Shown here one piece after another: positions 14,839 through 40,669 of a DNA stretch of 64,000 bases. Position 1 is the first letter of the stretch, and each line of letters opens with the position of its first letter. The stretch lies in NCBI GenBank assembly GCA_047495785.1, contig JBLDXI010000016.1, positions 62,001 to 126,000 on the forward strand. The letters are read 5' to 3'. The translations under genes were made by a program, and so were the position numbers. Under the pieces are notes generated by a model. That model was not told the DNA's origin and made no database searches. It saw only the letters and a program-made list of their open reading frames with translations. The stretch comes from Lepidodermella squamata. Its lineage: Eukaryota > Animalia > Gastrotricha.

Positions 14839-16553
14839 TTACTCGCGAATGGCACCCTGGTTGCCAGGCTGGGGACGAGGACCAGTTTGCGGGCGGCGGG
14901 TGGTGGTCGGGCGGGCCTGCGGACGAGGACGAGTCGTCGGCTGAGCGATGGGGCGGCGGGTAGTGCGACCTCCTTGAACAGGGGCAGTAGTTGTCTCTTC
15001 AGCCGGCGGAGCTTCTGTCGCAGCAGTAGTGGTCGGCTGGGTCGGCTGCTGGCCTCCAGGGATGAGACCGGCCGTCTGCAGCGCACCAATGTTGCCCTGA
15101 GCCAGGGCGGCGACTTCCTCGGTGGTGAGCACGGTGTTGCAGACGAGGACGTTGTCGATGTTGCCGGTGAAGGCGCCGAGGGCCTGGTCGTCGCCGACGA
15201 CGTACGGGCAGTGGGCGAGGGCGAGCGGGCCGGCGGCGGGCGCGCTGCCGACGAGGGCGCCGTTGACGAAGAGCTCGGCGAGCTGCGCGGTCGCGTTGAA
15301 CACGACGCAGACGGCCGTCCAGCCGCCGTTGGTCGACGGCGCCGGGGCGGTGAGGTTGGCGGAGGCGCCCGAGTCGGAGCGCAGGCTCGCGAACACGTTG
15401 TCGGTGGGCGTGACGCCGGCGATGAGCGTGTACAGCGTCGCCGCGGCGTTGTTGTTGTTCGACAGCACGCCGGCCGACTGCGTGCACTGGAACGGGGCGG
15501 CGACGTTGCAACTGTGAAGACAAGGCTAAGGTCATAGACATGGTAATTCATGTAATAGTCTTACCGGTATTCGAAGCACCACGAAGCACCCTCGCCTGTG
15601 CCGAGCTCGAACGTCTTGAGGCCGGGGATCTCGAGGCGGCCGGTGTTGACCTGCAGCGAGCCACCAGTGGTGCCAGTCGCCGAGGCGGTCACGTCGAGCT
15701 GGGCGTTGCCGTAGGCGAAGGTCGGGAAGCGGTTGACGGACTGGTCCTCGAGGGAGGTGTCGAAAGGCAGCCAGAGGGCGCACTGGCGGGCATTCGAGCC
15801 AGTGAGCGGCGGCTCGGGCGTCGTCAGCACGACGGAGCAGGCGCACTCGGCGAGGCTGAAGGCGGTGCCGGGCGCGCAGGGCAGCGTCGAGTCGCCGAGT
15901 TGGAACGCGTCTTCGCGGTCGGGCAGCGCCACCAGGGTGTTGCCGAAGGCGTCCGAGCACGCGCTCGCGTTCAGACTCGCTGGGGCGGCCGTGGTCTGGG
16001 GCAGGGCGAGGCAGAAGCCGGTGCAGGTCTCGTCCGGCACGCACGTGCAAGTTGCGACGTCGATGCGCTCGCCAGACGGGCAGCAGTTGACAGTCTCCTG
16101 GCCGGTGGCGCCACACGTGAAGTACTGGCGGCAGCCTTGGCCGGGCAGTTGGTAGCAGCCGGCAGCGGCGATGGTCGGGTTCGAGCACGGCGAAGGCTGG
16201 CACGGCACTGGGCCCTCGGCGCGGCACGTCAGGCGAGCTTCGTCCCAGAAGGTGCCCGGCTGGCACACCTGGAAGATGGCCGTCGCCGTCGTCTCGTTCA
16301 GGTACAGGCACTGGAAGTACGAGTGGCAGTCGAGCGGGTTCGCGAAGAAGTCCTTCTGGGCAGTTCGAGACAGGCAGTCGAAGCAGTACGTGTTCGCGTC
16401 GAACCCAGGCGCAGGCGCAGGGTTAGGGTTATTCGGCGGTGGAGCTGGTGGGCCGGCAACTGGGGCGCGGCGCGTTGTAGTGCGATCGCGGGCAAACGCC
16501 GCATCAAGACAACCGGCGATCAGGAAAGCTACTACAATTGAATATTTGAGCAT
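14839..16553 (-). CDS. Secreted chitin-binding (CBM14/peritrophin-A) + LamG/ConA-like protein, Pif/BMSP-like, copy A
   Basis: Signal peptide; FFANPLDCHSYFQC...CQPGTFWDEARLTC; further Cys-rich modules; CALWLPFD...LamG-like domain; Thr/Pro/Arg-rich tail. One intron at 15512-15564. Confidence 0.85.
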
Positions 16554-17639
16554 TTCTCAAAATGAATCGAATCAAATCGAAAAGATGAATAAAAAAGGAA
16601 TAAACAGTGATTGATGATTGAATGGTGGATTAGGGGGAATTTTATAGTAGAAAATTCTTGTTGGCATTGCGAAGCTCTAATTGGAGCGCTTGTTTTTTCG
16701 GTCGTAATTATTCCCAGCCAACACAACTGATCAGCTGACTGCACTACGCAGAATGACTCATTTGGTAGTTTTGATTTTAATTGGGAGGCCAATAGCGGGA
16801 TCGGTTCAGTGCGCTATTGCTTTGCCAAAATATCTAATTCACTGATCACTGATCACGCCTTGTTCTGCTTGAATAAAAAATGGACTGAACGATTGTGCGT
16901 TACGTTTGGTTAGAAGTTCATGTAGCTTGGAAGGCCAACTCAGCAGAAGCGTTTGTGTATTTCTAATGATTTGATTCATAACATAATTTATCCAAGAATT
17001 CATTGTTGATGTTGTTGACAGGCTAAGCGAGGTCAGCTCAGTTTCTTTTGGTATCAGCGATTAAAATACTTTTATATATATTCTCAATTCAGTCGATTGG
17101 AAAGGATCCATATTCAAATCCAGTGCTGTGAGTTATCCTAGGTTTAACATCAAGGTACTTCGCACTAATGACGAATTTTCATTCGTTTCTCACAATTCTC
17201 GCAATTCATACGGCCCAATTTTCGACTATAACGTACTGGCAAACATAAAATGCCTGTCTCGTGCAAGGCAAATAGCATAAATTTCATAAGCATAAAATGA
17301 ACTTCAGAATTCTCTTGCCACCTTTTCATTATCCGGGTCTGACGCCAATTGTGGGCTGAAATCTATCACCGTGCGTGGCATTTGACGCAAATGTCAAAAA
17401 CCAGTCAGACTGGTTTATCAATATTGAGTGGCGAAAACGGAGTTATGAGACACGCGAAATGTTGACGTGGTTGGGTTTTATTCGCAATTAAACTCGGACA
17501 GATAATTAAACGCGGACAGTTAATAAATAATGCGCTCAACCAGACTCGATTGTACCTATATTAAACGGCAAATCAATATCCGCCAGATCATTTTTGAAGT
17601 CAAATGCTGGGAATTGCATAGGCTAATCGTATTTAGAAA

Positions 17640-18674
17640 ATGGGAGCATTACTTGTGGCCTTTCTAATGGTGATGACTGGCGGCACAGCTCAGTACGTCG
17701 GTCAAGAAATGATCGAAGCATGCAGCCACTTGTTACCTGGGGTCTATGCGGCATTGACAGGCGCTTTGGGTGTCGAATACTTAGCGCCCTGCAAGAACTT
17801 CACAGGTCGGCCTCCGCTCAAGTCTTACATCGAACGAGATAAAGTATGGTTGCCTCATTTTCACCACAAAAACGCGATTTCAGATTTTGCTATGTCTGAT
17901 GGATTCACTGAAAGGAATTTTCTCTACCGCGACTCAATAGCCAATGATTCGATCGGGGTCTATTGGCAGAAGGTTGGCGTTTTCACCTCACTATGCCCGA
18001 TGGAGTTCGAACTATTCCCCTTCGACACCCAGTCTTGCACGGTATCATTCGTCCTTCAGGAGAATAGCAACGCCGTAGTTTTCGTCCCGAGCTCTGCTTC
18101 ATCGGTAGATGCTGATTTCATGAGCCCAGGGTTGCAATGGACCTTCCTCGGATGGAACAAAAGTGTCAGCTTCATCAATGTGTTCGGCAATCGCAGCGCC
18201 GCCCATTTTACCTTCAATTTTCGTAGAAAGCCAGACTTTTACATCAATAACCTCATGATTCCTTGTTTCATCCTGTCGAGCCTTGAGATCGCCTCGTTCT
18301 TTCTACTGCCAGATATACCTGACAGGCCGGTGTTCACGGTTACCATCCTACTGGCTATGACGTTTTTACAGGGCAGCATTTTAAGCCGAATTCCGCCGAA
18401 ACCACAGCGCATTTTCCTGAGCAACTACACAGATCTGTGCTCGCTGTTCGCTTGGGCTTGTACCATTTACTCACTAGCCTCGTGTGGCTTCACCAGAGCT
18501 TACAAATCGTTTTTCAAGAGACCGGTGGGGTTCTGCCTGTTGCCTTGTGGCGGTAAAACTGGAATGACCTTGGGTAGATTTATCGATTCGTTCGCACTCG
18601 GAGTGGCCATTGCTATGTTTGTCTCAATCAATGGCTACGCCCTATCGGTAGCTATCAGCGTCGGTCACATATAA
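17640..18674 (+). CDS. Divergent intronless Cys-loop ligand-gated ion channel subunit
   Basis: Signal peptide, VWLP, Cys-loop CPMEFELFPFDTQSC, FRRKPDFYINNLMIPC and four TM helices with a short M3-M4 loop. Confidence 0.88.
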   Translation: MGALLVAFLMVMTGGTAQYVGQEMIEACSHLLPGVYAALTGALGVEYLAPCKNFTGRPPLKSYIERDKVWLPHFHHKNAISDFAMSDGFTERNFLYRDSIANDSIGVYWQKVGVFTSLCPMEFELFPFDTQSCTVSFVLQENSNAVVFVPSSASSVDADFMSPGLQWTFLGWNKSVSFINVFGNRSAAHFTFNFRRKPDFYINNLMIPCFILSSLEIASFFLLPDIPDRPVFTVTILLAMTFLQGSILSRIPPKPQRIFLSNYTDLCSLFAWACTIYSLASCGFTRAYKSFFKRPVGFCLLPCGGKTGMTLGRFIDSFALGVAIAMFVSINGYALSVAISVGHI

Positions 18675-19660
18675 GCCAGGCTTAATGGAAGAATAACCAT
18701 GATGATTTGATCTATCACTGACTCGTACCATCCGTCCATCAACTTAAATTAGTTCTAGGTAGCTAGTTCTAGTTCTAGGTGCACGCCGATCTCTACCGAT
18801 GGTGAATATGTTATCTATCACTTCAATGTAAATATTGTTGCATGATTTATTAAAATTCGGATAGTTACTCCATCGTCTTGTGTAATTCCTAGAGCAAAAA
18901 GCGATTCAGCTTGGTATTCTGGACCTTTCATCCCTTCAGGGGAAAATCGGTGTGCATATTGCGTAGTGTGTGCGATGAACTATAGGATCCTCTAGCTTGG
19001 GGTACTTTTTGGAATTTTGGTCCCGATTTTATCGGACCAAGGGTTCCTCCCCAGTCAAAAGTCTGTAGGCCTAGACTAGGCTCCTGGGCCTATTATCGGC
19101 CCAATTGAACCGAGCCTAGGTCAGGTCTTGGCCTAGGCTAGGCCTAACAACAAAGCTTTGAACATGGCCCGAGAATGCTGGGCCTGGTCTAGGCCTAGCC
19201 AATTTTCTTGAGCTCTGGAGGTTCAGTACCTCACGTTGGTTTTATATTGATTCAATGACTCATCTATCTTCACGGTGTAACTTCGTTCAAAATGTCCCTA
19301 GAATCGATAATTAGAATAAGTGCTGTGTTCATCAGCCATTAAAAACTTTACTTGGGTTACCTTTTACCTTTGGCAAAAAAACAATAAATTGCAAACAATA
19401 TTTACGGTTTGCCCTAAAAAATTGGGTTCGCCCTCGAAAACCTGTCAATCCGATAATTCTTAATTTATGAAAATAGTTGTGGCCAATTTAGCAATTAATC
19501 GGCGCAACACGAAACAAAACGAAACGTCGAGTATATTTGAAGGTCAAACAATTTGGAAAATAACTAACTTGTATCGATCGCAAAGTGGTATCCATCTGAG
19601 GCTTTGCAATTGACTAATTTTAAAAGGTTTTCATAATTATTTAAATAGTTTTTGAACAGT

Positions 19661-20969
19661 TTATTCTGCTGATGTCATTTTACTGACGTAAACAGTAATT
19701 ACGATGAAACCGAAGAGAAATGCCGATAAACCGGCGAATAGATCAATTATTCTGATCACTCTAATACCACATTTGAATACATTATTTCGGAGCACTAAAC
19801 GCTTCATCGATGCTATTTTCGCTACAGAACAAGTAGCCATCGTGTAAATCGTGATCACAACACAAATTATCATCAGATAAATGACAATGTTGATCAAATA
19901 AACTTCCTCGGCAGTTCGAGGTATCAACGTGAACACAAGAGTCAGTACAACTGCCATAGCTAGGTTAACAGTTACGCAAAACGTCGGCCGATCCGGGTGT
20001 TTAGGATCCATTAGTAAGCCGGCAACTTGCAGTAAGAACAAGGTCAAAGTTGGCAGGAAGACGTTGCCAACATAGTACTGATACTTTCTATCGAGAATTA
20101 GTTTCAAAGTCACGTGATCCGAGCCACCAGCATTGAAAACAGTTCCGCTGTAGTTAACATAACTCCAGATATCATCAGATCGAAGCGGAGGGTATGAACT
20201 TTGAATGGAAATTTCTCCGAGATTGATCGCAACTTCGTTCCTTGCGTTTTCATTCTCAAACTCGTAATTGCACCATGCTGTATCGAATGGGAACTTCGTG
20301 TACTTGAAACCAAAACACATCGAGGTGAATGGCCGAACGCAGTAGATAAGAAATTTGGGATCAGGCCCACGGAACGGCCTGATTTTCACCGTACTTTCTC
20401 TAGAACAAGGCATACGCTGAAATAGTTCAACTTCGCGTAATCGTTTACTTACTCTCTTAGAGGTCTCGAGTTCCCGATCGCATTGATATGCTGCATATCT
20501 GGCCACCATACGTCCTCTTTTGGTACCTCGAATTGTATGCGGTCCAACAGTGCCTGCCGAATATTTTTGTAACCGGGAAGCAGATCAGATCGAATATCAC
20601 GGCCGCATGGCACGTCCCAAAAAATGCGGAATGTCATCGCAACTGTCATGCTTTAATTGAAGCCGCTAGGATTCATGAAATTGTAAAATGGCTATCATAC
20701 CTCATAGTTGCATCATTGACTTCGGTTATTTGTAGAATTCTCGAAATTAGGTAACTTTGAATAGGGCTCGAAAAGTTGCTTGTCTGCAAATGGTTTGCAG
20801 CTGGTAAATTGCTAACCTTGGCCATAGGACACAGCTGGAAAAATCGGTCTTGCATCTCTTTCAATTTGATTGGGTCGCCGAGCAGTTGTACCATGTCGCC
20901 GTTACTTTGTGCTTGGGTCAAAGCAAACAGCAGAACGAATTTTGCGAATTTCATTATCAAAGGCATCAT
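19661..20969 (-). CDS. Divergent Cys-loop ligand-gated ion channel subunit with two small introns
   Basis: Three ORFs are joined in frame by GT-AG introns at 20651-20700 and 20400-20452. Motifs VWWPD, Cys-loop-like CFGFKYTKFPFDTAWC, LDRKYQYYVGNVFLP and four TMs. Confidence 0.87.
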
Positions 20970-22127
20970 TGTAGAAAATTAGTAATGCAAATGTTCTACT
21001 GTAAACACAAGTGTATTAACAAGTGTATTAACAAGTGATAATGGAATTCAGTGACAGTTACGGCTCAGGGATTTGCTTCAAACTTCAAAATTTACCAGTA
21101 AAAGTAAATTCAGAAAGTTCGCCTTTTCAAAGCTGTTAATTTTTTGTTTGCATCAGATAATTCGTCACGCTATGGATTTTCGCAATTTTTCCTCAACTCT
21201 CTGGTCTAGAGGTGTTCTGAGATGTGGTGAGGTTTTGCTAGTTGCTGGATATTCAGAAATTCAGCGTTAAAATGAAGCTAACGTTTGCAATTCAGCCTGA
21301 AAGTAGGAAACTGGAAGGGCGGTTTCCCATGTTTTAAGATTTAATTGACAGTAATATGGAGGTCTGATGCATGAAAAGACGCGAACAAACGAAAAAACCA
21401 GTTCTGAGGAGTATAACAATTTACTCTTGCCCCCTGAATTTCTTGAGCTGTACTGAGAACTCGGCACAACAGAAGTTTTCAATTATAAACGGACATGCGT
21501 TTTATAAACAAAGATTATCAAAAATTGATGGCAGTGAGCGTTTAATGTTAGAGATCAGCTGACTTTTAACTTGCCGATGCATCACTGAAGGCACTCATCA
21601 CTCGCATACCTCATACATATTTTATAAATAAAAGATAATTCGCGGCGCACTCTTTGATTATCTGAGCGCGTTGTTAGCATGAAAAACACTTTGAAGCTGA
21701 CATTTCAAATCTGTTGGGAGTCTTTGCAGTTGCTGTAGCACAAAATTGCTCGATGAGTTTTATTTTTAAACTTCAAAAGAAATAAATAAGGACAATGCGC
21801 AGGATCGATGAACTGTGTTTAGTCATTATTTTTTAAGGCCGAAATACTTTGATAACTGTAACTTTTTGTGATGGAATCTTTAATCTTGACTGCGAAATTT
21901 CTCATTATTGCATGGAATTGTACTTCAGGGTCGAATAAGTCAATTGCAGGAGCGTACGAGAATAAATAAAGAAATATGATGAAACCTAAATCATATCATG
22001 GTTCTTAGCGCATGCCGAATTAGCCTCGTCCGCGGTGCCCACGTCATGCCGACCTGTGCTTTTCCTCACATTCGTAGCGTCAATTTTTGACCTGACTTTG
22101 AAGTATTTCGAAATTGAAGCTTTCAAA

Positions 22128-24738
22128 ATGACATCCGTATTCTACGCGCTCATACTGCTCTGTACTATCAAAGTAATTTTATCGCAAAAACCGAATCGAA
22201 TGTCAATCCTGCTGCTGAACCCTATCACAGGCAATCCACCATCAACAGGCCTTGGCTGCTATATCGGGGCCAAAATCGCTGTAGACACAGCTAACAATCG
22301 ATCCGACTTCCTACCCGATTATCACATTGAAATCCAACACGAAGACGAAGCTGCTGGGAGCCAAGCAACCCGTCAAGCTGTCAACTACTTCCGAAGCTTC
22401 GAAAATGGCAATAGATCCAATGAGATTCAGTCACCCATTATTATGGGTCCGATATTTTCAGGTGGCTGCAAAGCCATGGCACCAGCTTTGCATCACTTCA
22501 ACACTCTAACTTTTTCCATATGTTCATCCCCATTTCTAGCGGATCGGACGAAATACCCGAATCTGTACTTGATGAGATCGACAAGTCGTGTCCTAACAAT
22601 GGCACAGGTTATGTTTATCAAAAATATCGGACGCTGGCAGAAGTTCGGTATTATAACAAATCCTGGGTCAGTTTTTGACTACACAACAGCCGCGATTTTA
22701 CAAGACATTGCGTTGTACTCGGCCAATCTAACGATTGGATATTTCGACATAGTCATGGACATGGATGATGAGTACATAATGGCGTTGAAGATGAGTGACG
22801 TCAGGATTGTCTCGGTTGTAACTTCGATTGCGAGGCTGGTCTTTCGGTTTCTGTGTCAAGCTCATAAATTCGGGCTAACTGGGCCGAGATACGTTTTTCT
22901 AATGATTGGGAGCACGTATTCCGACCCTTTGACCATGGCGGATCCTGTACTACCAGGGTGCTTGAAAGCAACTTTTATCGAACAAATGAAAGTGAGTGAC
23001 AAGCGGTCTTTTTGAGCGGGAAAATATGGGCAGTGTTTTTGATAGATTTTTCACATTTAAATTTATTATTTTCTGAAATTTTGAAATCTCAACTGAACAA
23101 GTTTTAAGTTATATTTTGAAAATTTGAAAATTTATTAGTTTCACAATTATTGTCGGTTAACAAAAGCTTCTTCTTTTTCAGTATTCTTACTGGATTGCTC
23201 CGATCATGTCTACCCTTGATGCTGATATCGTGTCTCCGTTGAACCATACGCTGGCTAATTTCGATCAAATCTACGATCGATATTCAAACTACGCACCTCG
23301 CACGTTCGACTACGAGTGGCGCTTTTTGTGCTACGACAACATGATGCAAACCCTCCTGGCGCTCGATAAATCCGAGAATCAGCTGAAGAACCTGAATCTC
23401 AGCCTTAAAAACACGAAAACTCACGCAGAACTAATCAGCCATCTCGTCAACCAAACTGCGGTGAACATCGAATACTTCGGGCTGAGAGGCGGGAAGTTCA
23501 GCTATAATAAGCAGGGTGAGGTCGATGCTGACGTCCAAACCATTAGCTACTGGACCCCTCAGAACAAACTCCAATCCCTCTACACAGTTCAACAATTCTC
23601 AAACGCGTCAGGTTACACTCTGAATAGCTATTGGTTGAGGAAAAATCAAGGCATAAATTGGCTGACTAATGACGGCAAACCTCCAAAAGATCGGGTTGGG
23701 TTTATTCAGATCTTGGACATAATTCCAACTTCAGTTCTATACGTGGTCATATCTATATCCATCGCCCTTAATTTGGCCATTCTCGCTGGAATCGCGAGGG
23801 CTCTTTTAGCCAAAAACGAAGTTCAACCAACGGAGAATTTGCGGGTAAACTATTTAGGGCTGATCGGATGTATTACAACGAGCTTGGCTGCCATCACTTT
23901 TTCAATAGATCAGCTTCAAGTTTCCGTATTAATTTGGTATCTTCGTCGCATTCTTCTAGCTTTGGGATTGTCGCTGATCTTCGCAGCTGTGTCTATTCGG
24001 CCTATCACGCTGTCGGTCAATATGAAAGTTAAATGGGTTCAGATACTAGGGCTTCATAGTACGACGTCATTCCGAGAAGAAAGTAACTCTCAGCGAAAAA
24101 ATAGTAACTCTCAGCGGAAGCTTTCAACGACAAGAAGCCGCATAATTCAGGTCAGGCCGTTTCAGGAATCTCGATCCTCTCAGCTGGAAAGTGTCTCTCA
24201 GATACGACCGGCTTCGTCAATACCCACCAATCCTAAACAAACCATTGAAAACATGTTGGTAATTGAAAAATTAAGCTTCAACTTAGCTGGCATCGTTGTT
24301 CTGCTTGACTCAATTCTAGTTGCGATCTGGCTTGGGCTTTCCAATGTGTCTTGCGACCTTGCTAAGTTGTCATCTGTGCTTCAAGAAATGGCGGACATAG
24401 TTGTAGAAACTCGTCATATCAAATGCGAGTCTTCAACTGATGAAACAGCTTGGATATACGCGTTGTGCGGCGTGAATGCGTTCTTATTGGTTTGTGGAGC
24501 AGTTGCATTGGTGAAATTGCGCCACATTGCAAAGGCTAGAAAGGTAGACATTCCTCAGCTGCTCTTCACATCAGTCGCTGTTGTAAATTCAGTTTTGATT
24601 TTTCTGGCCGTTTTGCTTGTTACTGCGATTTTGCAGAACCTTGTGAATAGGCATGTCGCAATAGCTTTTTTCGGACTTATCTTGTCAGCTACAGCGGCTC
24701 TGACCTGGTTAGTGCCAACTTTTCAATTCAAAGAATGA
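22128..24738 (+). CDS. Class C GPCR, GABA-B-receptor-like (Venus-flytrap/ANF-receptor domain + 7TM)
   Basis: Signal peptide; AKIAVDTANNRSDFLPDY; IMGP; SSPFLADRTKYPNLY; FLCQAHKFGLTGPRYVF; WLTNDGKPPKD; about 7 hydrophobic helices. One intron at 22992-23181. Confidence 0.82.
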
Positions 24739-25387
24739 GTTTGTTCATTCCAAAATGAATTCAATAGGTCATTCATAACTGGTTTTTTTTCAAACAAAGG
24801 TCGACAGGTCCGCAATATCAGAATTTTAATTCAGCATATCGGTCATGTAATGTGTGAGCTTATCGTATAAAATTATCGTAAAAGTTATGAACAAAACTTT
24901 TTATCAAAACAGTATACTCTTCAAAGAGTTATAACTCCTTCGATTAAAACCCCAGCAAACAACGATTGCTGGGCTTTTGGTGAAAGGACCTTAACCTGCA
25001 ATGATATTTAAAAACGGATATTAACTTGGGGCAAAGCAAGCATTTCAAAATTCATTCCGAAGCCAGACTGCTGACTGATGAACTGCTTTTCCTCTGAATT
25101 CGAAATTCAACTGATGACTGATTACATAATATGTCATGTTTTGAAATCTAATACAAGCTGTGGAACTGGATCATTCAAATTGAATTGGTTCCGTTATTCC
25201 GATTGTAGATGGTTGACCCAATTTGCGCCAGACGCAGCCGACCAACAAATAATTAGCACGCATAACAAAGTTCATCCCAAATAAATAGGCCGGAAAATGG
25301 GATGTAGATCATCTCCAATCGATAATCAATCTCTCTGTATAAGCCTCTAGCGAACAAGCTGCTTAATAAGCTTCGGCAAATATCATC

Positions 25388-27108
25388 ATGAAAACCGTTT
25401 TAGTAGCTTTTCTACTTGCTGGCTGCCTCAGCGCAGCTTTCGGCCGCGATCGCACTACAACGCGTCGTGCCCCTGTCGCTGGGCCACCCGCCCCTAGCAA
25501 CCCGAACCCGCCGCCTGCGCCTGGGTTCGACGCGAACACGTACTGCTTCGACTGCCTGTCTCGAACTGCCCAGAAGGACTTCTTCGCGAACCCGCTCGAC
25601 TGCCACTCGTACTTCCAGTGCCTGTACCTGAACGAGACGACGGCGACGGCCATCTTCCAGGTGTGCCAGCCGGGCACCTTCTGGGACGAAGCTCGCCTGA
25701 CGTGCCGCGCCGAGGGCCCAGTGCCGTGCCAGCCTTCGCCGTGCTCGAACCCGACCATCGCCGCTGCCGGCTGCTACCAACTGCCCGGCCAAGGCTGCCG
25801 CCAGTACTTCACGTGTGGCGCCACCGGCCAGGAGACTGTCAACTGCTGCCCGTCTGGCGAGCGCATCGACGTCGCAACTTGCACGTGCGTGCCGGACGAG
25901 ACCTGCACCGGCTTCTGCCTCGCCCTGCCCCAGACCACGGCCGCCCCAGCGAGTCTGAACGCGAGCGCGTGCTCGGACGCCTTCGGCAACACCCTGGTGG
26001 CGCTGCCCGACCGCGAAGACGCGTTCCAACTCGGCGACTCGACGCTGCCCTGCGCGCCCGGCACCGCCTTCAGCCTCGCCGAGTGCGCCTGCTCCGTCGT
26101 GCTGACGACGCCCGAGCCGCCGCTCACTGGCTCGAATGCCCGCCAGTGCGCCCTCTGGCTGCCTTTCGACACCTCCCTCGAGGACCAGTCCGTCAACCGC
26201 TTCCCGACCTTCGCCTACGGCAACGCCCAGCTCGACGTGACCGCCTCGGCGACTGGCACCACTGGTGGCTCGCTGCAGGTCAACACCGGCCGCCTCGAGA
26301 TCCCCGGCCTCAAGACGTTCGAGCTCGGCACAGGCGAGGGTGCTTCGTGGTGCTTCGAATACCGGTAAGACTATTACATGACCGATGGACTCTACTGAGA
26401 CCTTGGTTTACTTTTCAAAGTTGCAACGTCGCCGCCCCGTTCCAGTGCACGCAGTCGGCCGGCGTGCTGTCGAACAACAACAACGCCGCGGCGACGCTGT
26501 ACACGCTCATCGCCGGCGTCACGCCCACCGACAACGTGTTCGCGAGCCTGCGCTCCGACTCGGGCGCCTCCGCCAACCTCACCGCCCCGGCGCCGTCCAC
26601 CAACGGCGGCTGGACGGCCGTCTGCGTCGTGTTCAATGCGACCGCGCAGCTCGCCGAGCTCTTCGTCAACGGCGCCCTCGTCGGCAGCGCGCCCGCCGCC
26701 GGCCCGCTCGCCCTCGCCCACTGCCCGTACGTCGTCGGCGACGACCAGGCCCTCGGCGCCTTCACCGGCAACATCGACAACGTCCTCGTCTGCAACACCG
26801 TGCTGACGACCGAGGAAGTCGCTGCCCTGGCTCAAGGCAACATTGGTGCGCTGCAGACGGCTGGTCTCATCCCTGGTGGCCAGCAGCCGCCTCAGCAGAC
26901 CACTACTGCTGCGACCGAAGCTCCGCCGGCTGAAGAGACCACCACTGCCCCTGTTCAAGGAGGTCGCACTACTCGCCGCCCCATCGCCCAGCCGACGACT
27001 CGTCCTCGTCCGCAAGCCCGCCCGACCACCACCCGCCGCCCGCAAACTGGTCCTCGTCCTCAGCCTGGCAACCAGGGCGCCTTTCGTGTATACGGCGGAT
27101 TCATTTGA
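25388..27108 (+). CDS. Pif-like CBM14 + LamG protein, copy B
   Basis: Same protein as copy A; intron at 26365-26420. Confidence 0.87.
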
Positions 27109-27800
27109 ATGAAAGATTTGAAAGAACTTTCAAATAACATTTATGATAATTTATTTCCACATGATATGATTGATATGCTGAAATAAAATTATGATGTTGA
27201 TAAATCGAAGTCATTTTTCCTAAATCAGGCCAAACCTGTCATTTAGCCAAGACTTTGTTGAAATCATTGATATAGTTTGTCATATGACTCGCTGTATCCT
27301 CATAGCGATTATTCAAGCAGGGGAGAAAATGAATATTACGCTTGCCAGATAATAAACTCTTGCATTTTTCTCGAATTCGAAAAATTCTCTAGGAATGATG
27401 TGTGATCTATGCTAACAAACAAGTAGCGTGCGTCGCATGAATTAGTTTTTGTATTTCAATTGTCCAATCGTCTTTATTCCTCTCGTCCAATGCTGCTGAA
27501 GATGGTTGCTGGTCATACGCTCTTAGTGAACCGGGTAACACTTTCCAACACAAATAAAATGATAAAATGATAATCCTGGAACCTGAACTCTGAAACAATA
27601 CCGAACCGGGAATGTATGTAATATTCGGTTTCGCTAATCGCACGCTCTTGGCAGGCTATTTATGCTGTACTTCAATTTTAAAAGAAAATCGTCAACAGAA
27701 AAATAAAAGCTTTAATCATGTCTTTGTTATAATTTTAAAATTCGGCGAATGTTTAATGTTTAATTTCCAAACACTTGTTTTTCAATTTAAATTGCATGTT

Positions 27801-28982
27801 TCAGTAACGAACTTTCGACAGAACGTAGGTAGCATACGCTTGGAGACCAACCAACCAGATCACAAACACGAAAAAAGCTCCAGTGTCGACAAGTCGGCAA
27901 AACCTAACGTATTTAGGCTGGCCATGGCGGGTGTACACCAGAATTTGTCGACGAGCCTCATCGCCGAAAATATCGATAACACCAGCCATTACCACGGAGT
28001 AAAGCGACACGAAAAGCGCCAACACGATTTCATTCATGATGTAGCTCGTCATGAAAACACTTTGCGACGAACGGGGGGTAATTTCCAGCACGTGGTCGTG
28101 TTGCATGATGAACGCTAGCAGGATAGTTACGGCGTACTGCGCTCGTTTAGTCGAATCTAGCGGAATCAGTGAAGCAATACTAATCAGCAGCGACAGTATG
28201 GCGTTGATAAAAATAATGCTTGTTGTGTAGTACCATGGCGATCTGTGGAGCTTAATGTAAAACGTGACTTCATCATAGCTGTGAGGCCCAAAGAAGTCGC
28301 GAATTGTTTTCGCCTTGAAGCCTCTGAAATTCCAGCTCGATGAGGCTGGAAAAACTATGCCTTCCATTTGCATAATCTGACTTTCGTTGCTGATTTCGAG
28401 ATATTTCGAAGTAACAAAAGACGTAATCGTGATGGGGCAAGACTGCGAATCGAACGGGAAGTCGGCCAGATCAAGTTCGCAGCTAGTTAGCATATCCCCG
28501 ACTATCAAATACTCGAACATTCCGGTCTCAGGCTGCAGCATCATCATTCTCGTCGTTTTCTCAGTCATCCCCGTACTAAGAAATGAGTTTCGATTGACGA
28601 GCTGTGGCTTCCAGTATTGCGTCTCATTAAGCATTATCGGCACCCCCTCCGTAGTGTAATTTAGTTCCCGAGCGATCTGCCGAACGCAAGGCACGAAGTA
28701 ATTCATTGACACCCCTGCTGTAATACTCATCGCTCCCTTCACATCGTCAATATCGCGAAACCGGTCGACTGTGACGACGACCTTGACTTGGGTTGCAACT
28801 TGTTCATCTTCTTGCGGGCTCATGGCCTCGGTTGATAGGAGACATCTAGCTCGAATTTCGCGGCGGAAAATTGTTGAAATTGGCGGGTTGGTCTCCTCAT
28901 CACTCTTGTTGCTGAACTCACATACTTGTCCCAAGCTAGTCCATAGAATAGCGATTAAAAAAGAAATAGATAAAAGCCGCAT
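27801..28982 (-). CDS. Divergent intronless Cys-loop ligand-gated ion channel subunit
   Basis: Signal peptide, YWKPQL, Cys-loop CELDLADFPFDSQSC, KLHRSPWYY and four TMs. Confidence 0.88.
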   Translation of the reverse strand: MRLLSISFLIAILWTSLGQVCEFSNKSDEETNPPISTIFRREIRARCLLSTEAMSPQEDEQVATQVKVVVTVDRFRDIDDVKGAMSITAGVSMNYFVPCVRQIARELNYTTEGVPIMLNETQYWKPQLVNRNSFLSTGMTEKTTRMMMLQPETGMFEYLIVGDMLTSCELDLADFPFDSQSCPITITSFVTSKYLEISNESQIMQMEGIVFPASSSWNFRGFKAKTIRDFFGPHSYDEVTFYIKLHRSPWYYTTSIIFINAILSLLISIASLIPLDSTKRAQYAVTILLAFIMQHDHVLEITPRSSQSVFMTSYIMNEIVLALFVSLYSVVMAGVIDIFGDEARRQILVYTRHGQPKYVRFCRLVDTGAFFVFVIWLVGLQAYATYVLSKVRY

Positions 28983-29672
28983 TAGGAATTTAATAATAAA
29001 TGACCATATATTTTTTCATTTTGAAGGGCTAAAGATCGATGTTAGTCGCAGTGGGTCACATAAAACAGTAAATTATTTACGTTTATCGCATTTCGGCTCT
29101 GAGTTTAACGCAGAATTTTCGAACTTTCCAATGAATTTGTGCCGTAATTTCATAAAAGGCTCTTATCATCGAACTCGAGGTGAAGTTCGCGAATTATAAG
29201 GCAATCGATTGTGCACTCATCGACAGTTGGCTTCGCTCCCAATCCATCTATCCCAGCTATCATACGTGACATTTAATGTGTCGTAGCAATTTGTGTAATA
29301 GCCTTTATTCTATGAATCACCCTTTCTCGTTGACTCCTAAAAGATTCCGAACAGTACCAAAACCATAGCCAAAACCCTATCCCAATAGTATTCCATGAAA
29401 GCAAACGAGACTTTTCGATGCAAAATAATGGACAATGTTTCGGTGTCGTTAGCATGACGTCAGTTCCGCCTCGTTCAAGCATTTCAAAATTCAGGTTTCA
29501 GGAGGATAACTGCTACGAAAACGTTCATTTTTCGGGTAAATTCCATCCGTTGAACTGGCTGAGTACTATCATCAGCCACGATCGCCATGAGTGGACGAAA
29601 GGAATAAAGTAAAAATAAATATTATACAATTAATAACAGCTAATTCCTGTTATACTCGCCCAATTGATCACA

Positions 29673-29860
29673 TCGCTAGCGTCGTTAAATAACTCGGATT
29701 TAGGCTTGTTTACATCTATTTCAAGGTGATAGGTGACAAGTAAAAAAGCTTTTGTTTTTTGCCTAATCATTCACGTTAAATAGCCGCTTTTTCTTGTCAC
29801 ACGTGATCTTGAAAAGTATGTAAACAAGCCTAAATCCGAGTTATTCAACGACGCCAACGA
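29673..29860. mobile_element. MITE (about 43-bp terminal inverted repeats)
   Basis: TCGCTAGCGTCGTTAAATAACTCGGATTTAGGCTTGTTTACAT (29673-29715) versus ATGTAAACAAGCCTAAATCCGAGTTATTCAACGACGCCAACGA (29818-29860). Confidence 0.8.
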
Positions 29861-30240
29861 CATGCATAAACGCAAAAGATCAACACGGAAACCCATTCCA
29901 AGAAAGTTGTTTAAAAAAAAACAAGATCTCAGCTAGTAAATACATTGCAGCTTTATTTCTCAACTCCCTAATTTGCAGAATTCGAGGAATTCTTCGGAAA
30001 TTTCACCAGATAAGAGCACAAAACAACATATCTTCTGCATTAGCCTTTCGTAAAAATTAAAATGGTAGGTCTCGTATATCATTAAGAACAGGCTGACAGA
30101 TCATCGATATCATTATTTTATTTCAACATATCAATCATATCATTGTAGGCAAGCCGCTTATCAAAGCTGTTCATAGAATCATGTGGGAATAAATTATCAT
30201 AGAAGTTATTCAAAAGTTCTTTCAAATGTATCGACAATTT

Positions 30241-31955
30241 TTAGTCGCGAATTGCGCCCTGGTTGCCAGGCTGGGGACGAGGGCCAGTTTGCGGGCGGCG
30301 GGTGGTGGTCGGGCGGGCCTGCGGACGAGGACGAGTCGTCGGCTGAGCGATGGGACGACGAGTAGTGCGACCTCCTTGAACAGGGGCAGTGGTGGTCTCT
30401 TCAGCCGGCGGAGCTTCGGTCGCAGCAGTAGTGGTCTGCTGGGCTGGCTGCTGGCCACCAGGGATGAGACCGGCCGTTTGCAGCGCACCAATGTTGCCTT
30501 GAGCTAGAGCGGCGACTTCCTCGGTGGTGAGCACGGTGTTGCAGACGAGGACGTTGTCGATGTTGCCGGTGAAGGCGCCGAGGGCCTGGTCGTCGCCGAC
30601 GACGTACGGGCAGTGGGCGAGGGCGAGCGGGCCGGCGGCGGGCGCGCTGCCGACGAGGGCGCCGTTGACGAAGAGCTCGGCGAGCTGCGCGGTCGCATTG
30701 AACACGACGCAGACGGCCGTCCAGCCGCCGTTGGTGGACGGCGCCGGGGCGGTGAGGTTGGCGGAGGCGCCCGAGTCGGAGCGCAGGCTCGCGAACACGT
30801 TGTCGGTGGGCGTGACGCCGGCGATGAGCGTGTACAGCGTCGCCGCGGCGTTGTTGTTGTTCGACAGCACGCCGGCCGACTGCGTGCACTGGAACGGGGC
30901 GGCGACGTTGCAACTTTGAAAAGTAAACCAAGGTCTTAGTAGAGTCCATCGGTCATGTAATAGTCTTACCGGTATTCGAAGCACCACGAAGCACCCTCGC
31001 CTGTGCCGAGCTCGAACGTCTTGAGGCCGGGGATCTCGAGGCGGCCGGTGTTGACCTGCAGCGAGCCACCAGTGGTGCCAGTCGCCGAGGCGGTCACGTC
31101 GAGCTGGGCGTTGCCGTAGGCGAAGGTCGGGAAGCGGTTGACGGACTGGTCCTCGAGGGAGGTGTCGAAAGGCAGCCAGAGGGCGCACTGGCGGGCATTC
31201 GAGCCAGTGAGCGGCGGCTCGGGCGTCGTCAGCACGACGGAGCAGGCGCACTCGGCGAGGCTGAAGGCGGTGCCGGGCGCGCAGGGCAGCGTCGAGTCGC
31301 CGAGTTGGAACGCGTCTTCGCGGTCGGGCAGCGCCACCAGGGTGTTGCCGAAGGCGTCCGAGCACGCGCTCGCGTTCAGACTCGCTGGGGCGGCCGTGGT
31401 CTGGGGCAGGGCGAGGCAGAAGCCGGTGCAGGTCTCGTCCGGCACGCACGTGCAAGTTGCGACGTCGATGCGCTCGCCAGACGGGCAGCAGTTGACAGTC
31501 TCCTGGCCGGTGGCGCCACACGTGAAGTACTGGCGGCAGCCTTGGCCGGGCAGTTGGTAGCAGCCGGCAGCGGCGATGGTCGGGTTCGAGCACGGCGAAG
31601 GCTGGCACGGCACTGGGCCCTCGGCGCGGCACGTCAGGCGAGCTTCGTCCCAGAAGGTGCCCGGCTGGCACACCTGGAAGATGGCCGTCGCCGTCGTCTC
31701 GTTCAGGTACAGGCACTGGAAGTACGAGTGGCAGTCGAGCGGGTTCGCGAAGAAGTCCTTCTGGGCAGTTCGAGACAGGCAGTCGAAGCAGTACGTGTTC
31801 GCGTCGAACCCAGGCGCAGGCGGCGCAGGGTTCGGGTTCGAAGGAGGAGCGGCGGGTGGGCCGGCAACTGGGGCGCGGCGCGTTGTAGTGCGATCTCGGC
31901 CGAAAGCTGCGCTTAGGCAGCCAGCAAGTAGGAAAGCTACTAAAACACTTTTCAT
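30241..31955 (-). CDS. Pif-like CBM14 + LamG protein, copy C
   Basis: Same protein; intron at 30914-30969. Flanks are homologous, in inverted orientation, to those of copy B. Confidence 0.87.
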
Positions 31956-32323
31956 GATGATATTTGCCGAAGCTTATTAAGCAGCTTGTTCGCTAGGGGC
32001 TAATAATTAGATATTGATTGCTGATTGGAGATGATTTCACATTCGATTTTCCGGCCTTTTTATTAGGGGTCTCATTTGGGATGAACTTTGTTATGCGTGC
32101 TAATTATTTGATTGTCAGCTGCGTCTGGAGCAAATTAGGTCAACTGTCCACAATCGCAATATATCGAAACAAGTTTCATTTTAGATAACCAAGTTCAGCA
32201 GTCTACAGTCTACAGCTTGTATTGGATTGTAGAACATGGCATATTAAGTAATCAGTTGAATTTCGAATTCAAAGCAAAAGCTGGTCACTCCTGGCTTCGA
32301 AATGATCTCAGCATGTATATAGG

Positions 32324-32499
32324 ATATCGTTAGCGTCGTTGAATAACTGAAATTTAGGCTTCTTTATGTCAGTTCCAAATCGAAAAGCGACGATTAAATC
32401 GTCAATTGTTTTCACGCTCTTTACAACACTTTTCAAATTGGAACTGACGTAAACAAGCCTTAAGTTATCCAACGAGTTATCCAACGACGCTACCGATAT
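32324..32499. mobile_element. MITE, same family as 29673-29860
   Basis: ATATCGTTAGCGTCGTTGAATAACT...TTTAGGCTT...TCAGTTCCAA pairs with TTGGAACTGACGTAAACAAGCCT...GAGTTATCCAACGACGCTACCGATAT. Confidence 0.78.
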
Positions 32500-33086: not shown

Positions 33087-36000
33087 TCAAGTACGGATAA
33101 TGCCTTGGTTGCCCTGAGGCCGTTGCGGCCGGCCGCCTGGGGGCTCGGTTGGAGGCGCAGCCGGCGTCGTAGTCTCAGGTAGCGGCGGCGCCGCGCCACG
33201 CGACGGAATCAAGCCCTCCGACTGCAGCAGTGCCAAATTGCCAGCAGCCAACGCAGCGACCTCACCAGTCGTCAACGGCAGGTTGCAAATCAGCACGTTA
33301 TCGATATTGCCGACAAACGCGCCCAGCACTTGGTCATCGCCGACGACGTACGGGCAGTGGGCGACTGCGGGCGGGCCGTTCAGGGTGTCGCTCGCCAACA
33401 ATACGCCGTTGACGTAGAGCTCAAGTACGGAGATTTGCTGGTCGTAGACAACGCAGGCTGACTGCCAGCCGTTTGCGACCGGGGCGTTGATCATCATGGC
33501 GGATTGGTTGGTGCGCACGTTGCCTTGCAGGTTGTTCGTGCCGTTGATGCCGGCGATGATTGTGTACAGCGTTGCGGCGGCGCTGTTGCTGTTCGACAGG
33601 ACACCGCCGTTTGTGTTGCACGAGTACGGAGCCGTTGTGCCACAGCTACACGTTGAAAAGAAAAAGAAATAAAATTATAGTGGGGCAAATATTTTTCTTA
33701 AATTTTCTTAATTTGGTCGATCCCATTGCCAAGTGAAATTACTTGATTGATATTATTTTTGCATTTTGAATTTTTGACCATGAGTTATAATTTCGCCTCT
33801 CATTTTAGGGTTTTATGATTCCTTTTCTGTGTATTTTGTTTCTTTACGTTACTTCTATGGGACATGCGAAAAATGTCACAATCGGAGTTTTTCGCACGAA
33901 ACCATTGCTTGTTGTGGAGTAATATCTGATTGAAACTCGACCAGCTTTTAAAACTTGAAAAATATGGGCGAATTCGGTTTCTCCAAGTCAAGAGACGCTG
34001 TTAACTTATGCTGCCGAAGGTTGATGGTTGCTCATGAAATTCCTATAAATTACAAAAGTTGCCCTTCGGGAGATGTCGATTATTAATTCCACTAAAAAAT
34101 AGGAATGCAATTTTCTGTGATAAATTAAACAAAAATACCGGATACCAGAATTCAACATTTTCGGCCCGAATATTCGGTCTTAGATTACTGAAAAAATTCG
34201 GAAACTTCTGGCGTACGTGGGAAAATACCGAAATTTACCGAACAAGTTACCATCTCAGGGTTTTCGGGTTTCCCCCGTTAAATGTCTGATATCTTCGGGA
34301 TTAAATGGAAGATTCTCCCAACAAGTTTAATTTCGAAAAATTAATTAAATTTACTTTAAGGAGGTAAAATTAACAAACGTTTGCCCAAGTTCTGGGACAC
34401 TCTGTTTTAACACGTCTCAATTTGTAGGTAAATTTTTAATCCAATTTTAGGTGGTACTAATTTGAACAACTCGAGCGTGATTCCGGGTTCGCTTTTCGAA
34501 TCTACTCGCGGTGAAAATTCCGAACTTTCAGAAAGCTCTGTGGAAACCAAAAATATTATAAAATCTTCAATTTAATAATTTGAAGTTTTTCTAAAATTTC
34601 GCGTAAATCAGAAAAAAATTGGAAATTTCAATTTAGGTTTCCCAAACTATATCGTATGCAATTGGTGTAGTATTATTGAACTTGATAATTGCTCGGGAAG
34701 CTTCTCCTCTTCAAGAATCAGATCTGCCGATAGCAAGCCTGAAGCAGAAAAATGCTACAAATTCTAAGGAAGTTTTATATCCGAATTTGCGATAAAAATA
34801 GTATCACTAGTACCACTAATACCTACGTTCTGTAATTTCTCATAGTACTTATAATTGAGATCTTACCGGAAAGAGAAGCACCACGAAGCACCTTGAGGGT
34901 TGCTCAGCTGGAAGCTCTTCAAGCCCGGAATTTCCAGCCGGCCATCATTGACGAACAACGACCCGCCAGGGCTATTAACCGTATTAGCCGGGTCGAACTG
35001 AGCATTGCCGTAGGCGAAGGTCGACAGCTGGTTGATAGACTGATCGGCTAGGCTGGTGTCGAACGGCATCCAGAGCGAGCACTGGCGCCCTGAGGAGGCG
35101 ACGACGTCGGGCGCCGGCGGCAGGACCACTGAACAAGCGCACTCGATTAGGCTGAAGGTGGTACCAGGGGCACAGGGCAGGTCGTAGTCGCCCAGGCGGA
35201 ACGCATCCGGGCGGTCTGGGTTAGCGACCAGGATGTTTCCGAAAGAATCTGTGCAAGCCGTAGCGTTGCTCGTAGGCGCTTGGGTGACCTAAATTTGAAA
35301 CACGAAAAAGGGGATTCATTTTTATGACCGACCAAATTTGATTGAAAATTTTGAAATTGAAATTGAAAATTGAAATTTGAAAATTAAATTTGAAAATTGA
35401 AAATTGAAATTTCGATTCTGAATTTTATAGGTACTAATTTTGAAATTACAGGGTTTTTTATTTTTAATTCAATTAAAAGAACTTATCGAAAATTTCAGTT
35501 TTTCAATGTCAATTTTCTTCATTTTCAGAAAGATTTCAATTTTCATTAAAATTATAAATTATTTGTACATTTAATTAAAATATCAAAAGACAGGATTTAT
35601 CAATTTTTAATTCAAATTCAGATTTTCTTTTAATTTTAAAATTTTAGAGAATTATAAGGCTTGTTTAACCTGAGGTAAAGCGAGGCAGAAATCTCGGCAC
35701 GACAAATCAGCGACGCAATCGCAAGTATTTGGCTGATAGCGGTAGCCAGTCGGGCAGCAGCGAGTTTCATTGAAGGCGCAGGTGAAGAATTGGCGGCACG
35801 ATTGGCCGGGAATTTGGTAGCACCCGACAGCGGCGATGGCCGGGGTTTCGCAGGGTGACGGCTGGCAACGCACCGGGCCCTCGACTTGGCACGCCAGGAT
35901 CGATTCGTCGAAAAATGTACCCGGCGGGCAGAATTTCAACGTTGCTGAAGCGTTGTTAGCATCCAGATATTGACACTGAAAAAAATGGAAAATTTCACAT

Positions 36001-36631
36001 GAAAAAAAATGAAAAAGAGGAAAATTGAAATCAAGTCATCTCACATCAAAAAAATGGAATAGGTAATTATTTTTCGTTGGAATTTTCGAATTTTCAATAG
36101 ATTGGAATTTCGATTCCAAAATTTTCAATTTTACGAAATTTCTAAAATTCGAGCAATTTAACGAAACTTGCGAGTCACTTTTCTAAGATGACCTTGAAAA
36201 GTAAGCTGAAGAAAATACGGAATATCTTCAGTTGCTGGAATAAGTTCTAAATTCTGGATTAATAATCTCGAACATTGAGAGAAAAAATTAAAACCTTTAA
36301 AATTTAAAAAATCAATTTAAAAATTAAATCTGTCTAATAAAGTTAAATTTATATGAGAGTTTGGATGACCTTAGAAATTATGATTTTTGGAATATTTCAT
36401 GAGCTTTCTTGCCTGAAAATAGCTGTGGCAGTCGAGGGGATTGATGAACAAGTCCTTGACGTTGGTTCGCATCAAGCAGTCGAAGCAGTAGTCATTCGCG
36501 TTGAACCCAACGTCATTTATCGGGACAGGAACAGGCGGACCGGCCGTGGTCGTTCGTGGCCGGCCAAGCGAGACGCCAACCAAGCATGACGACGCAACTA
36601 GAAAAACCGCTAATGAAAATAAATTCTTCAT
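33087..36631 (-). CDS. Diverged Pif-like CBM14 + LamG paralog (4 exons)
   Basis: Exons at about 36631-36413, 35978-35670, 35289-34867 and 33645-33087. Motifs FNANDYCFDC...NPLDCHSYFQ, CPPGTFFDES, CSLWMPFD and VAHCPYVVGDDQVLGAFVGNIDN. The last intron is at the same codon position as in copies A-D. Confidence 0.85.
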
Positions 36632-37182
36632 TTTGAAAGAATCAAATGCGACCAATTTCGCAATTTTTGTAAGATAAAAGCAAATTTTATGAGCTTTATA
36701 TCAATTTTTGGGTCTAATTGGCTAAGGCTCAGTAGCAATTAGAGTCGGGAATTTCTATGGCGTAATAATTTTGAATGAAAATTTTGACATCGCCAAGCTC
36801 ATATAAGGCATGATTTCGACTTTACAAATTAATGAAAATCTGAATTAAATATTTTTGCTAAATTTTACACAATTTGAATAAAAATTTCTGAAATTTTTTA
36901 CTATTTTCCGAATGATTGAATTCATTTACATTTTTTATTTATAGACGCCCGAGCAGCACCGCCTTGTCCATAACCAGTTCGCCGATGAATTCAAAATATA
37001 TTATTCCACTCATCCGCTGGTAAATGAAAGTCTATACCATAAAATGAGCCCAAACAAAACACAGGAAATACATGAATAACAATTGAGCAACTCCTAAACA
37101 CATCGTCGCGGCTATTTTGAGGCAGCAACTGGGACATTATATCTGAATTAACGGCTAAATAGTTTTCAGACAAATTTCAACT

Positions 37183-38574: not shown

Positions 38575-38888
38575 CAGTTTAATAATGCATTAACGATTTG
38601 CATTAAAGTTGACTGGATTGACTGTAACAGATCCAGCTTCGATTTGTTCCTGTTTTTAATCAAATAATAAAATTTAATTACGAAATAGCAAGATTTTGCA
38701 AATATAGGAAGAATTGGGTTATGCGAACAATCTGTTATTAGGGCTATGTGAGCGCGGACCAATTAGCCTGATAACGCATCAAGAAATGTGATTCTTGACT
38801 ATAAAAGCGAAGAAATGAAACCGATAGAATCATCAACAGCTTAATAAGCATTTCTTCTCCATTTGATAATCAAGAAACGATTTCGATA

Positions 38889-40669
38889 ATGATCCGATCA
38901 TCGATTGTAGTAGCTTTTGTGATCGCCGGTTGTCTTGATGCGGCGTTTGCCCGCGATCGCACTACAACGCGTCGCGCCCCTGTCGCTGGGCCACCCGCCC
39001 CTAGCAACCCGAACCCTCCGCCGCCTGCGCCTGGGTTCGACGCCAACACGTACTGCTTCGACTGCTTGTCTCGAACTGCCCAGAAGGACTTCTTCGCGAA
39101 CCCGCTCGACTGCCACTCGTACTTCCAGTGCCTGTACCTGAACGAGACGACGGCGACGGCCATCTTCCAGGTGTGCCAGCCGGGCACCTTCTGGGACGAA
39201 GCTCGCCTGACGTGCCGCGCCGAGGGCCCAGTGCCGTGCCAGCCTTCGCCGTGCTCGAACCCGACCATCGCCGCTGCCGGCTGCTACCAACTGCCCGGCC
39301 AAGGCTGCCGCCAGTACTTCACGTGTGGCGCCACCGGCCAGGAGACTGTCAACTGCTGCCCGTCTGGCGAGCGCATCGACGTCGCAACTTGCACGTGCGT
39401 GCCGGACGAGACCTGCACCGGCTTCTGCCTCGCCCTGCCCCAGACCACGGCCGCCCCAGCGAGTCTGAACGCGAGCGCGTGCTCGGACGCCTTCGGCAAC
39501 ACCCTGGTGGCGCTGCCCGACCGCGAAGACGCGTTCCAACTCGGCGACTCGACGCTGCCCTGCGCGCCCGGCACCGCCTTCAGCCTCGCCGAGTGCGCCT
39601 GCTCCGTCGTGCTGACGACGCCCGAGCCGCCGCTCACTGGCTCGAATGCCCGCCAGTGCGCCCTCTGGCTGCCTTTCGACACCTCCCTCGAGGACCAGTC
39701 CGTCAACCGCTTCCCGACCTTCGCCTACGGCAACGCCCAGCTCGACGTGACCGCCTCGGCGACTGGCACCACTGGTGGCTCGCTGCAGGTCAACACCGGC
39801 CGCCTCGAGATCCCCGGCCTCAAGACGTTCGAGCTCGGCACAGGCGAGGGTGCTTCGTGGTGCTTCGAATACCGGTAAGACTATTACATGACCGATGGAC
39901 TCTACTAAGACCTTGGTTTACTTTTCAAAGTTGCAACGTCGCCGCCCCGTTCCAGTGCACGCAGTCGGCCGGCGTGCTGTCGAACAACAACAACGCCGCG
40001 GCGACGCTGTACACGCTCATCGCCGGCGTCACGCCCACCGACAACGTGTTCGCGAGCCTGCGCTCCGACTCGGGCGCCTCCGCCAACCTCACCGCCCCGG
40101 CGCCGTCCACCAACGGCGGCTGGACGGCCGTCTGCGTCGTGTTCAACGCGACCGCGCAGCTCGCCGAGCTCTTCGTCAACGGCGCCCTCGTCGGCAGCGC
40201 GCCCGCCGCCGGCCCGCTCGCCCTCGCCCACTGCCCGTACGTCGTCGGCGACGACCAGGCCCTCGGCGCCTTCACCGGCAACATCGACAACGTCCTCGTC
40301 TGCAACACCGTGCTCACCAGCGAGGAAGTCGCCGCCCTGGCTCAAGGCAACATTGGTGCCCTCCAGTCTGCTGGTCTCATTCCAGGTGGCCAGCAGCCGC
40401 CTCAGCCGACAACTACCCAGGCTGCGACTGAAGCTCCGCCGGCTGAGGAGACCACCACTGCCCCTGTTCAAGGAGGTCGCACTACCCGCCGCCCCATCGC
40501 CCAACCGACTCGACGTGGCCCTATGACTCTGCCCACTCGATCTCCGCCTCAAACTGGACCCCGCACTACCACCCGCCGCCCGCAAGCCGCCAATCCCACC
40601 ACCCGCAACCCCCATGCTGGTCATGGCCCGCGTCCTCAGCCTGGCACCCAGGGTGTCGTCCGCGAGTAA
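38889..40669 (+). CDS. Pif-like CBM14 + LamG protein, copy D (longer C-terminal tail)
   Basis: Same protein; intron at 39875-39930. Confidence 0.87.

Follow-up and report, generated by a model that had tools for sequence, protein, structure and literature searches.

Identity within and around the core

How can genes whose ends and surroundings differ keep almost the same sequence in their middle? This question is raised by a 64,000-nt stretch of the genome of the gastrotrich Lepidodermella squamata (NCBI GenBank assembly GCA_047495785.1, contig JBLDXI010000016.1, positions 62,001 to 126,000; hereafter the window). It carries four intact two-exon genes, A, B, C and D, in the order -, +, -, +, each encoding a predicted secreted protein with a CBM14 region and a laminin-G domain. 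An earlier note, made from the letters of the window, had described four alternately oriented copies sharing a near-identical coding core of about 1.3 kb and had proposed an old origin by duplication, with ectopic gene conversion homogenising the cores. Our analysis leads to the same view: A-D are very probably old paralogs of one gene for a secreted chitin-binding matrix protein, with cores homogenised by non-allelic gene conversion. Coordinates are window positions (Table 1); the contig of the window is called C16, and a second array-bearing contig is called C103. The genome searched comprised 121.2 Mb in 151 contigs, and exons were analysed one by one.

The coordinates of the four copies and the identity profiles of all six pairs agree on the near-identical core. 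Sliding-window identity is 0.99-1.00 in six of six pairs from about position 25536 to 26800 of copy B. The 5' coding end and the tail reach only 0.6-0.9, and the flanks, at about 0.25-0.45, are unalignable. The core comprises 1283 nt including the intron (1280 in A) and is 99.5-100% identical among the four copies. Signal peptides, tails and flanks are thus diverged, as the earlier note had stated, and the equality of flank and core divergence that it had named as grounds for abandoning the proposal is not seen. An identical run of 825 nt is common to all four copies, and the longest pairwise runs measure 825-1080 nt. When the 47-88 differences of each pair were permuted, the observed run lengths were reached in none of 10,000 permutations (P<1e-4, six of six pairs). 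A Sawyer-type test works on condensed polymorphic sites, of which the core has almost none, and the run-length permutation was therefore used in its place. A 140-aa antisense open reading frame, cited earlier as matching in all four copies, is indeed the same in each and lies wholly within identical DNA of 68% GC. However, it carries no independent evidential weight, since the DNA is identical and so GC-rich that stop codons are rare.

The homogeneity extends to silent and intron sites. Four-fold synonymous differences number 0 of 167 in core exon 1 among A, B and C (D has one) and 0-2 of 87 in core exon 2, as compared with 6-17 of about 30 (20-59%) in the 5' end and 12-21 of about 65 (17-34%) in the tail, all between window paralogs. 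Of the eight copies on the two contigs, seven have an identical or almost identical intron. In copy A of C16, the first 17 nt of the intron are the same as in the other copies and the interior is only 68% identical, though both adjoining exons are identical. Young duplicates, whose cores have had no time to diverge and whose ends have changed fast through positive selection or replication slippage, are an extremely unlikely source of this pattern, even though indels are numerous in the ends, which code for low-complexity Pro/Thr-rich segments, and the similarity is limited to the transcribed unit. Young duplication and selection at the protein level are ruled out because silent sites are identical in the core and 17-59% different in the ends, and positive selection or slippage in the ends does not account for an intron interior 32% diverged between two identical exons. 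Together with the unalignable flanks, the contrast in synonymous differences upholds the earlier proposal of old duplicates with converted cores.

The segments of the genes also group the copies differently. The 5' ends unite A with D and B with C, the tails unite A, B and C against D, and the intron sets A apart from the rest. Because the groupings differ by segment, conversion fits, and young duplication or protein-level selection does not. By their sequences, the 5' ends show two subtypes, A/D and B/C. B and C also have about 190-300 nt of upstream sequence in common at 85-96% identity; on this sequence evidence, they are shown to be an inverted duplicated pair. Apart from this upstream region, flanks and intervals of the copies gave no alignment at the nucleotide level and only a distant Cys-loop channel match (27% aa) at the protein level. 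The idea that C-D arose from the entire A-B block by palindromic duplication was considered and rejected, as the intervals have no common content except the B/C upstream region and the distant Cys-loop match.

The same array on contig C103

C103 (230 kb) carries the same four genes together with a fifth family member, paralog E, and C103:115590-177897 is collinear with window positions 2919-64000 at 86-97% identity. It is probably the other haplotype, left unpurged, of a locally very divergent region. By coordinate offset, C103 would extend about 50 kb beyond the start of C16. The flanks of orthologous copies are 85-99% identical between C16 and C103; the loci are therefore older than the contig split, a further point against young duplicates.

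Core exon 1 is 100% identical among paralogs of one contig versus 99.4% identical across contigs, with four-fold differences at 0 of 167 sites within a contig versus 3 of 166 between contigs. Across both contigs, all eight copies have the same sequence over positions 25571-26371 of B. At seven core sites (B 25561/64/65/67/70, 26596 and 26809), the four paralogs of one contig agree with one another and all differ from those of the other contig. The reverse pattern, a variant specific to one locus and common to both contigs, was found at no exonic core site among the eight copies compared. The 25561-25570 cluster, which occupies the same place in A, C and D, holds five substitutions in 10 nt between C16 and C103, four of them silent and one a Thr/Ala change. 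Two dispersed copies of the gene, on contigs C7 and C26, have intermediate states at this cluster.

The extent of homogenisation also differs between the contigs. The interior of the A intron is unconverted on C16 only; on C103, the A intron is identical to that of B. The tails of A, B and C are 98-100% identical on C103 versus 90-93% on C16, and the B and C 5' coding ends are 98.9% identical on C103 versus 88.4% on C16. The 5' part of D is B-like on C16 and A-like on C103. These sequence differences in tracts point to conversion after the contigs diverged, which would make it recent and ongoing. The tracts, together with the contig-specific variants common to all paralogs, give the conversion claim of the earlier note additional support.

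Paralog E, used as an internal unconverted control, is not homogenised, and 10% of its four-fold sites differ between contigs. The array core differs between contigs at 3-4 of 252 four-fold sites versus 25 of 249 in E (Fisher P=3e-5). The dispersed C7 and C26 cores are 93-98% identical to the array, and their ends are only about 50-90% identical to it. In exon 1, 12% (C7) and 23% (C26) of four-fold sites differ from the array, and in exon 2, 6-7% differ. Codon bias alone does not freeze sites, because these equally codon-biased cores have drifted from the array. Likewise, close neighbours in this genome are not automatically homogenised, as two tandem actin genes 2.4 kb apart (C9:1441079-1444647) have only 83% DNA identity.

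Objections, mechanism and comparable systems

Several points weigh against conversion as we read it. C103 is possibly a segmental duplication instead of a haplotype, in which case the exchange would be between paralogous regions and not between homologs. Five of the seven fixed sites form one 10-nt cluster, so the sites perhaps represent only about three events. Strong codon bias depresses synonymous divergence, about two-fold as judged by the dispersed copies, and the low between-contig divergence is possibly in part constraint. Finally, the copy sequences were taken from the assembly consensus alone, and the source DNA was amplified by multiple displacement amplification (MDA), which makes chimeras (PMC11660948).

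The last point bears on the possibility that the identity is an artefact, either a consensus collapsed over similar copies or chimeric cores and inverted copies produced by MDA template switching. MDA forms inverted chimeras (PMC13265396), and the most perfect identity does sit in the middle of the repeat. Nevertheless, we regard an artefact as very improbable. Each copy sits between unique flanks, has a 5' end and a tail of its own and keeps its reading frame intact, and copy- or contig-specific variants persist within the core. The assembly contains the four-copy layout twice, on contigs whose flanks are 3-15% different; MDA chimeras are an unlikely source because the same layout stands on two diverged contigs. 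Collapse itself would need copies already about 98-99% alike. The published L. squamata assembly (122 Mb, 157 contigs, 43% GC, hifiasm, heterozygosity 2.99%) was built from HiFi reads averaging 13 kb, from MDA DNA of one animal (PMC11660948). Such reads exceed the 1.7-kb copy, and no short-read polishing is described (PMC11660948). If the assembly analysed here is the published one, a collapse artefact is unlikely, as reads would span each copy with its unique flanks.

In the mechanism that we propose, the four copies would overwrite one another's folded-domain part again and again through non-allelic gene conversion. The repair would be templated by DNA and proceed without crossover, most likely by synthesis-dependent strand annealing, and exchange with the copies on the homologous chromosome is also probable. 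Tracts may range from a few hundred to about 1,600 nt, with ends that are not fixed and that tend to stop at breaks in homology. Homology would be broken by the many indels of the Pro/Thr-coding ends and, in copy A of C16, by the diverged intron interior. The four genes would then differ in promoter, signal peptide and tail and yet have the same core. Conversion mediated by complementary DNA (cDNA) was rejected, as identity extends 17 nt into the A intron and seven of eight copies have homogenised introns; because the intron sequence itself is homogenised, the template was DNA and not cDNA.

This is ordinary concerted evolution by a known mechanism, and there is nothing mechanistically new in it; its general theory has been set out (PMC3924837, PMC2720389). 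The array is like inverted gene pairs of Drosophila in several respects. In Drosophila, the Amy and Hsp70 inverted pairs are known cases of concerted evolution of clustered duplicates. As in that type, the core is homogenised including synonymous sites, the flanks are diverged, the tracts are mosaic, and paralogs are closer within than between chromosomes; the inverted orientation permits conversion without loss of sequence. However, the array consists of four alternating copies plus an escaped fifth, its tracts mostly respect the part encoding folded domains, and its evidence comes from two contigs of one animal and not from two species. Human Y ampliconic genes undergo arm-to-arm conversion in large palindromes. 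There too, conversion within the chromosome keeps inverted copies near-identical and may thereby preserve gene function in regions with little recombination. In contrast to the Y palindromes, homogenisation in the array covers a gene body of only about 1.3 kb and not whole arms, its spacers contain unrelated genes, and its flanks are non-palindromic except for about 300 nt upstream of B and C. Palindrome conversion is a related theme of bioRxiv 10.64898/2026.03.09.710536.

One might go further and regard the array, with its conversion within and between homologs, as a selected device, like the Y palindromes, for self-repair and for keeping the dose of an abundant cuticle protein in a mostly parthenogenetic animal. 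We consider this unlikely. If true, the folded core would be held identical over eight copies while surrounding neutral sites differ by about 10%, and promoters, signal peptides and tails would be free to diverge for separate deployment.

Independent of any such function, the locus is a clean case of ongoing gene conversion in Gastrotricha, a phylum with almost no genome biology, and in the two contigs, the tracts can be seen to differ from one chromosome to the other in a single animal. For the CBM14-laminin-G family, trees and duplication dates based on the core would be misleading. What is new is the comparison of two contigs, the controls by synonymous sites and paralog E, and the codon-usage control by ribosomal genes.

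The inverted cores might also drive inversion of the intervals between them, as a switch or as a structural polymorphism of receptor genes, and the earlier note had named them as substrates for such events. Perfect inverted repeats of 0.8-1.6 kb, 3-9 kb apart, are potential crossover substrates. However, all three intervals have the same orientation on both contigs, and the up- and downstream flanks of each copy match those of its ortholog. No inversion of the A-B, B-C or C-D interval was found in the collinear comparison of C16 with C103, which samples two chromosomes, and interval inversion is thus highly improbable. The description of the intervening genes as receptors does not hold for C-D, which contains family member E; A-B contains Cys-loop channel gene pieces and a class-C G-protein-coupled receptor (GPCR) gene, and B-C a Cys-loop channel gene.

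Composition, gene models and protein

The converted core differs in composition from its surroundings. The GC fraction at third codon positions (GC3) is 0.90 in core exon 1 and 0.99-1.00 in core exon 2, as compared with 0.44-0.61 in the 5' end and tail of the same genes, 0.60-0.79 in paralog E and 0.44-0.57 in neighbouring genes. This coincidence of extreme GC3 with exactly the homogenised part could mean that GC-biased gene conversion, and not codon selection, made the core GC-rich, a possibility that concerns its composition only and that we consider doubtful. GC-biased conversion is known in multigene families, for example mammalian histones and Hsp70. The array is like these in that extreme GC3 coincides with the converted part; it differs in that single-copy highly expressed genes here are equally GC3-rich and the tract intron is AT-rich. 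GC3 is 0.94 in RPS3A (C46) and 0.81 in RPL15 (C9), both single-copy, and 0.74 in the best actin match, so that high GC3 is normal for high expression in this genome. GC enrichment of non-coding sites in the tract, which biased conversion predicts, was not observed: the tract intron has 39% GC, and the partly homogenised region upstream of B and C lies within a 500-nt stretch at 38% GC. The recently homogenised C103 tails are likewise not enriched (GC3 0.50-0.52). Polarising substitutions for an AT-to-GC bias yielded too few sites and was confounded by base composition. Because ribosomal protein genes are equally GC3-rich, the tract intron is at 39% GC and the C103 tails are unenriched, GC-biased conversion is unnecessary, though a possible contributor, and the high GC3 of the core is most simply read as the codon usage of a highly expressed gene. 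As the core GC3 of 0.90-1.00 falls within the range of the ribosomal protein genes, it lends indirect support to the suggestion in the earlier note that the copies keep up a high dose of one uniform matrix protein. Codon selection is weaker in disordered, poorly conserved segments, and the lower bias of the linkers agrees with this. In the L. squamata genome (43% GC), high GC3 should not be taken as a sign of biased conversion without a control for expression.

Each gene of the array has a single GT..AG intron of 53-56 nt that interrupts a codon. The earlier note mentioned neither this intron nor the sequence common to the B and C upstream regions nor paralog E. The two-exon model is supported by a 494-aa database protein (P0001) with the same two Pfam domains, because it aligns collinearly across both exons (residues 53-323, then 339-478). 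On C16, the usual stop codon of B is altered and the protein is longer by a few residues (27084-27108); B of C103 ends normally.

Table 1. Positions of the array genes, their parts, the intervals and related copies (window positions unless a contig is given)
Feature	Position	Strand	Basis and remarks
Copy A, CBM14 + Laminin_G_3 secreted-protein gene	14839-16553	-	Open reading frames, ATG and stop checked, alignments; type-I signal peptide, also in D
Copy B, same gene type	25388-27108	+	Open reading frames, Pfam, alignments; type-II signal peptide, also in C
Copy C, same gene type, tail-to-tail with B	30241-31955	-	Open reading frames; 1578-nt inverted repeat at 99%
Copy D, same gene type	38889-40669	+	Open reading frames, alignments; two extra tail insertions, found on both contigs
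Core of A	15127-16406	-	Start of CBM14 region to end of laminin-G domain, intron included
Core of B	25523-26805	+	
Core of C	30529-31811	-	
Core of D	39033-40315	+	
Intron of A, 53 nt	15512-15564	-	
Intron of B, 56 nt	26365-26420	+	GT..AG, 39% GC; splits a codon after its 2nd base and splits the laminin-G domain
Intron of C, 56 nt	30914-30969	-	
Intron of D, 56 nt	39875-39930	+	
B upstream region and 5' end	25308-25495	+	89% identical to C counterpart, 31848-32035
A-B interval	16554-25387		Two Cys-loop channel gene pieces and a class-C GPCR gene
B-C interval	27109-30240		One Cys-loop channel gene, 27801-28982 (-)
Paralog E, multi-intron, same domain order	~33087-36655	-	Between C and D
Dispersed intact copy	C7:1104644-1106522		Intron 263 nt
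Dispersed intact copy	C26:919722-922226		Intron 883 nt

Exon 1 encodes the signal peptide, a short Pro-rich linker, the CBM_14 domain and further Cys-rich modules; exon 2 completes Laminin_G_3 and continues into a Pro/Thr/Arg-rich tail. The Pfam scan gave CBM_14 at E=2e-5 (25 bits, cut-off 22.1) and Laminin_G_3 at E=9e-15, with no other domain found. The nearest database proteins are 46-51% identical, and a look-up of the exact product of the exon-1 open reading frame returned no record. The earlier note had called the genes Pif-like, which is apt for the module of CBM14 and laminin-G. However, Pif/BMSP proteins are defined by a VWA domain N-terminal of the chitin-binding domain (PMC11291548). 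No VWA domain was found in the Pfam scan of the array protein, in which the signal peptide directly precedes the CBM14 region. Like the Pif/BMSP mollusc shell-matrix proteins (PMC11291548, PMC7747718), the array protein is predicted to be secreted, with CBM_14 followed by Laminin_G_3 and with low-complexity regions; unlike them, it has neither VWA nor an acidic crystal-binding insert, and the gastrotrich does not biomineralise. By its predicted domains, the array gene has a module in common with Pif/BMSP and is not a member of that family. The protein perhaps binds chitin, maybe in the pharyngeal cuticle; a chitinous pharyngeal cuticle is reported for gastrotrichs (PMC5431905).

Paralog E is about 46-65% identical to the array at the aa level. 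It has two extra introns in the part that matches exon 1, and its last intron has the same position as that of the array. Because of these two extra introns, either the array lineage lost introns or E gained them. The signal peptide of the C7 and C26 copies is of the B/C type, and these two copies have only about 150 nt of upstream sequence in common. They were searched as a source of the odd A intron; their introns are unrelated to it, except for a common 3' end in the C7 copy.

Background GC in the window is about 42%, with four GC islands of 53-63%, one per gene copy. Its gene content includes Cys-loop channels, a class-C GPCR, TIR/NB-ARC-ankyrin genes and a polycystin-like lectin-PKD-REJ gene; because of this content, the window is animal DNA. 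The last of these lies at 55897-62820 (+), where four long successive open reading frames, of which three contain C-type lectin, PKD and REJ domains, resemble one polycystin-1 / egg-jelly-receptor-like gene.

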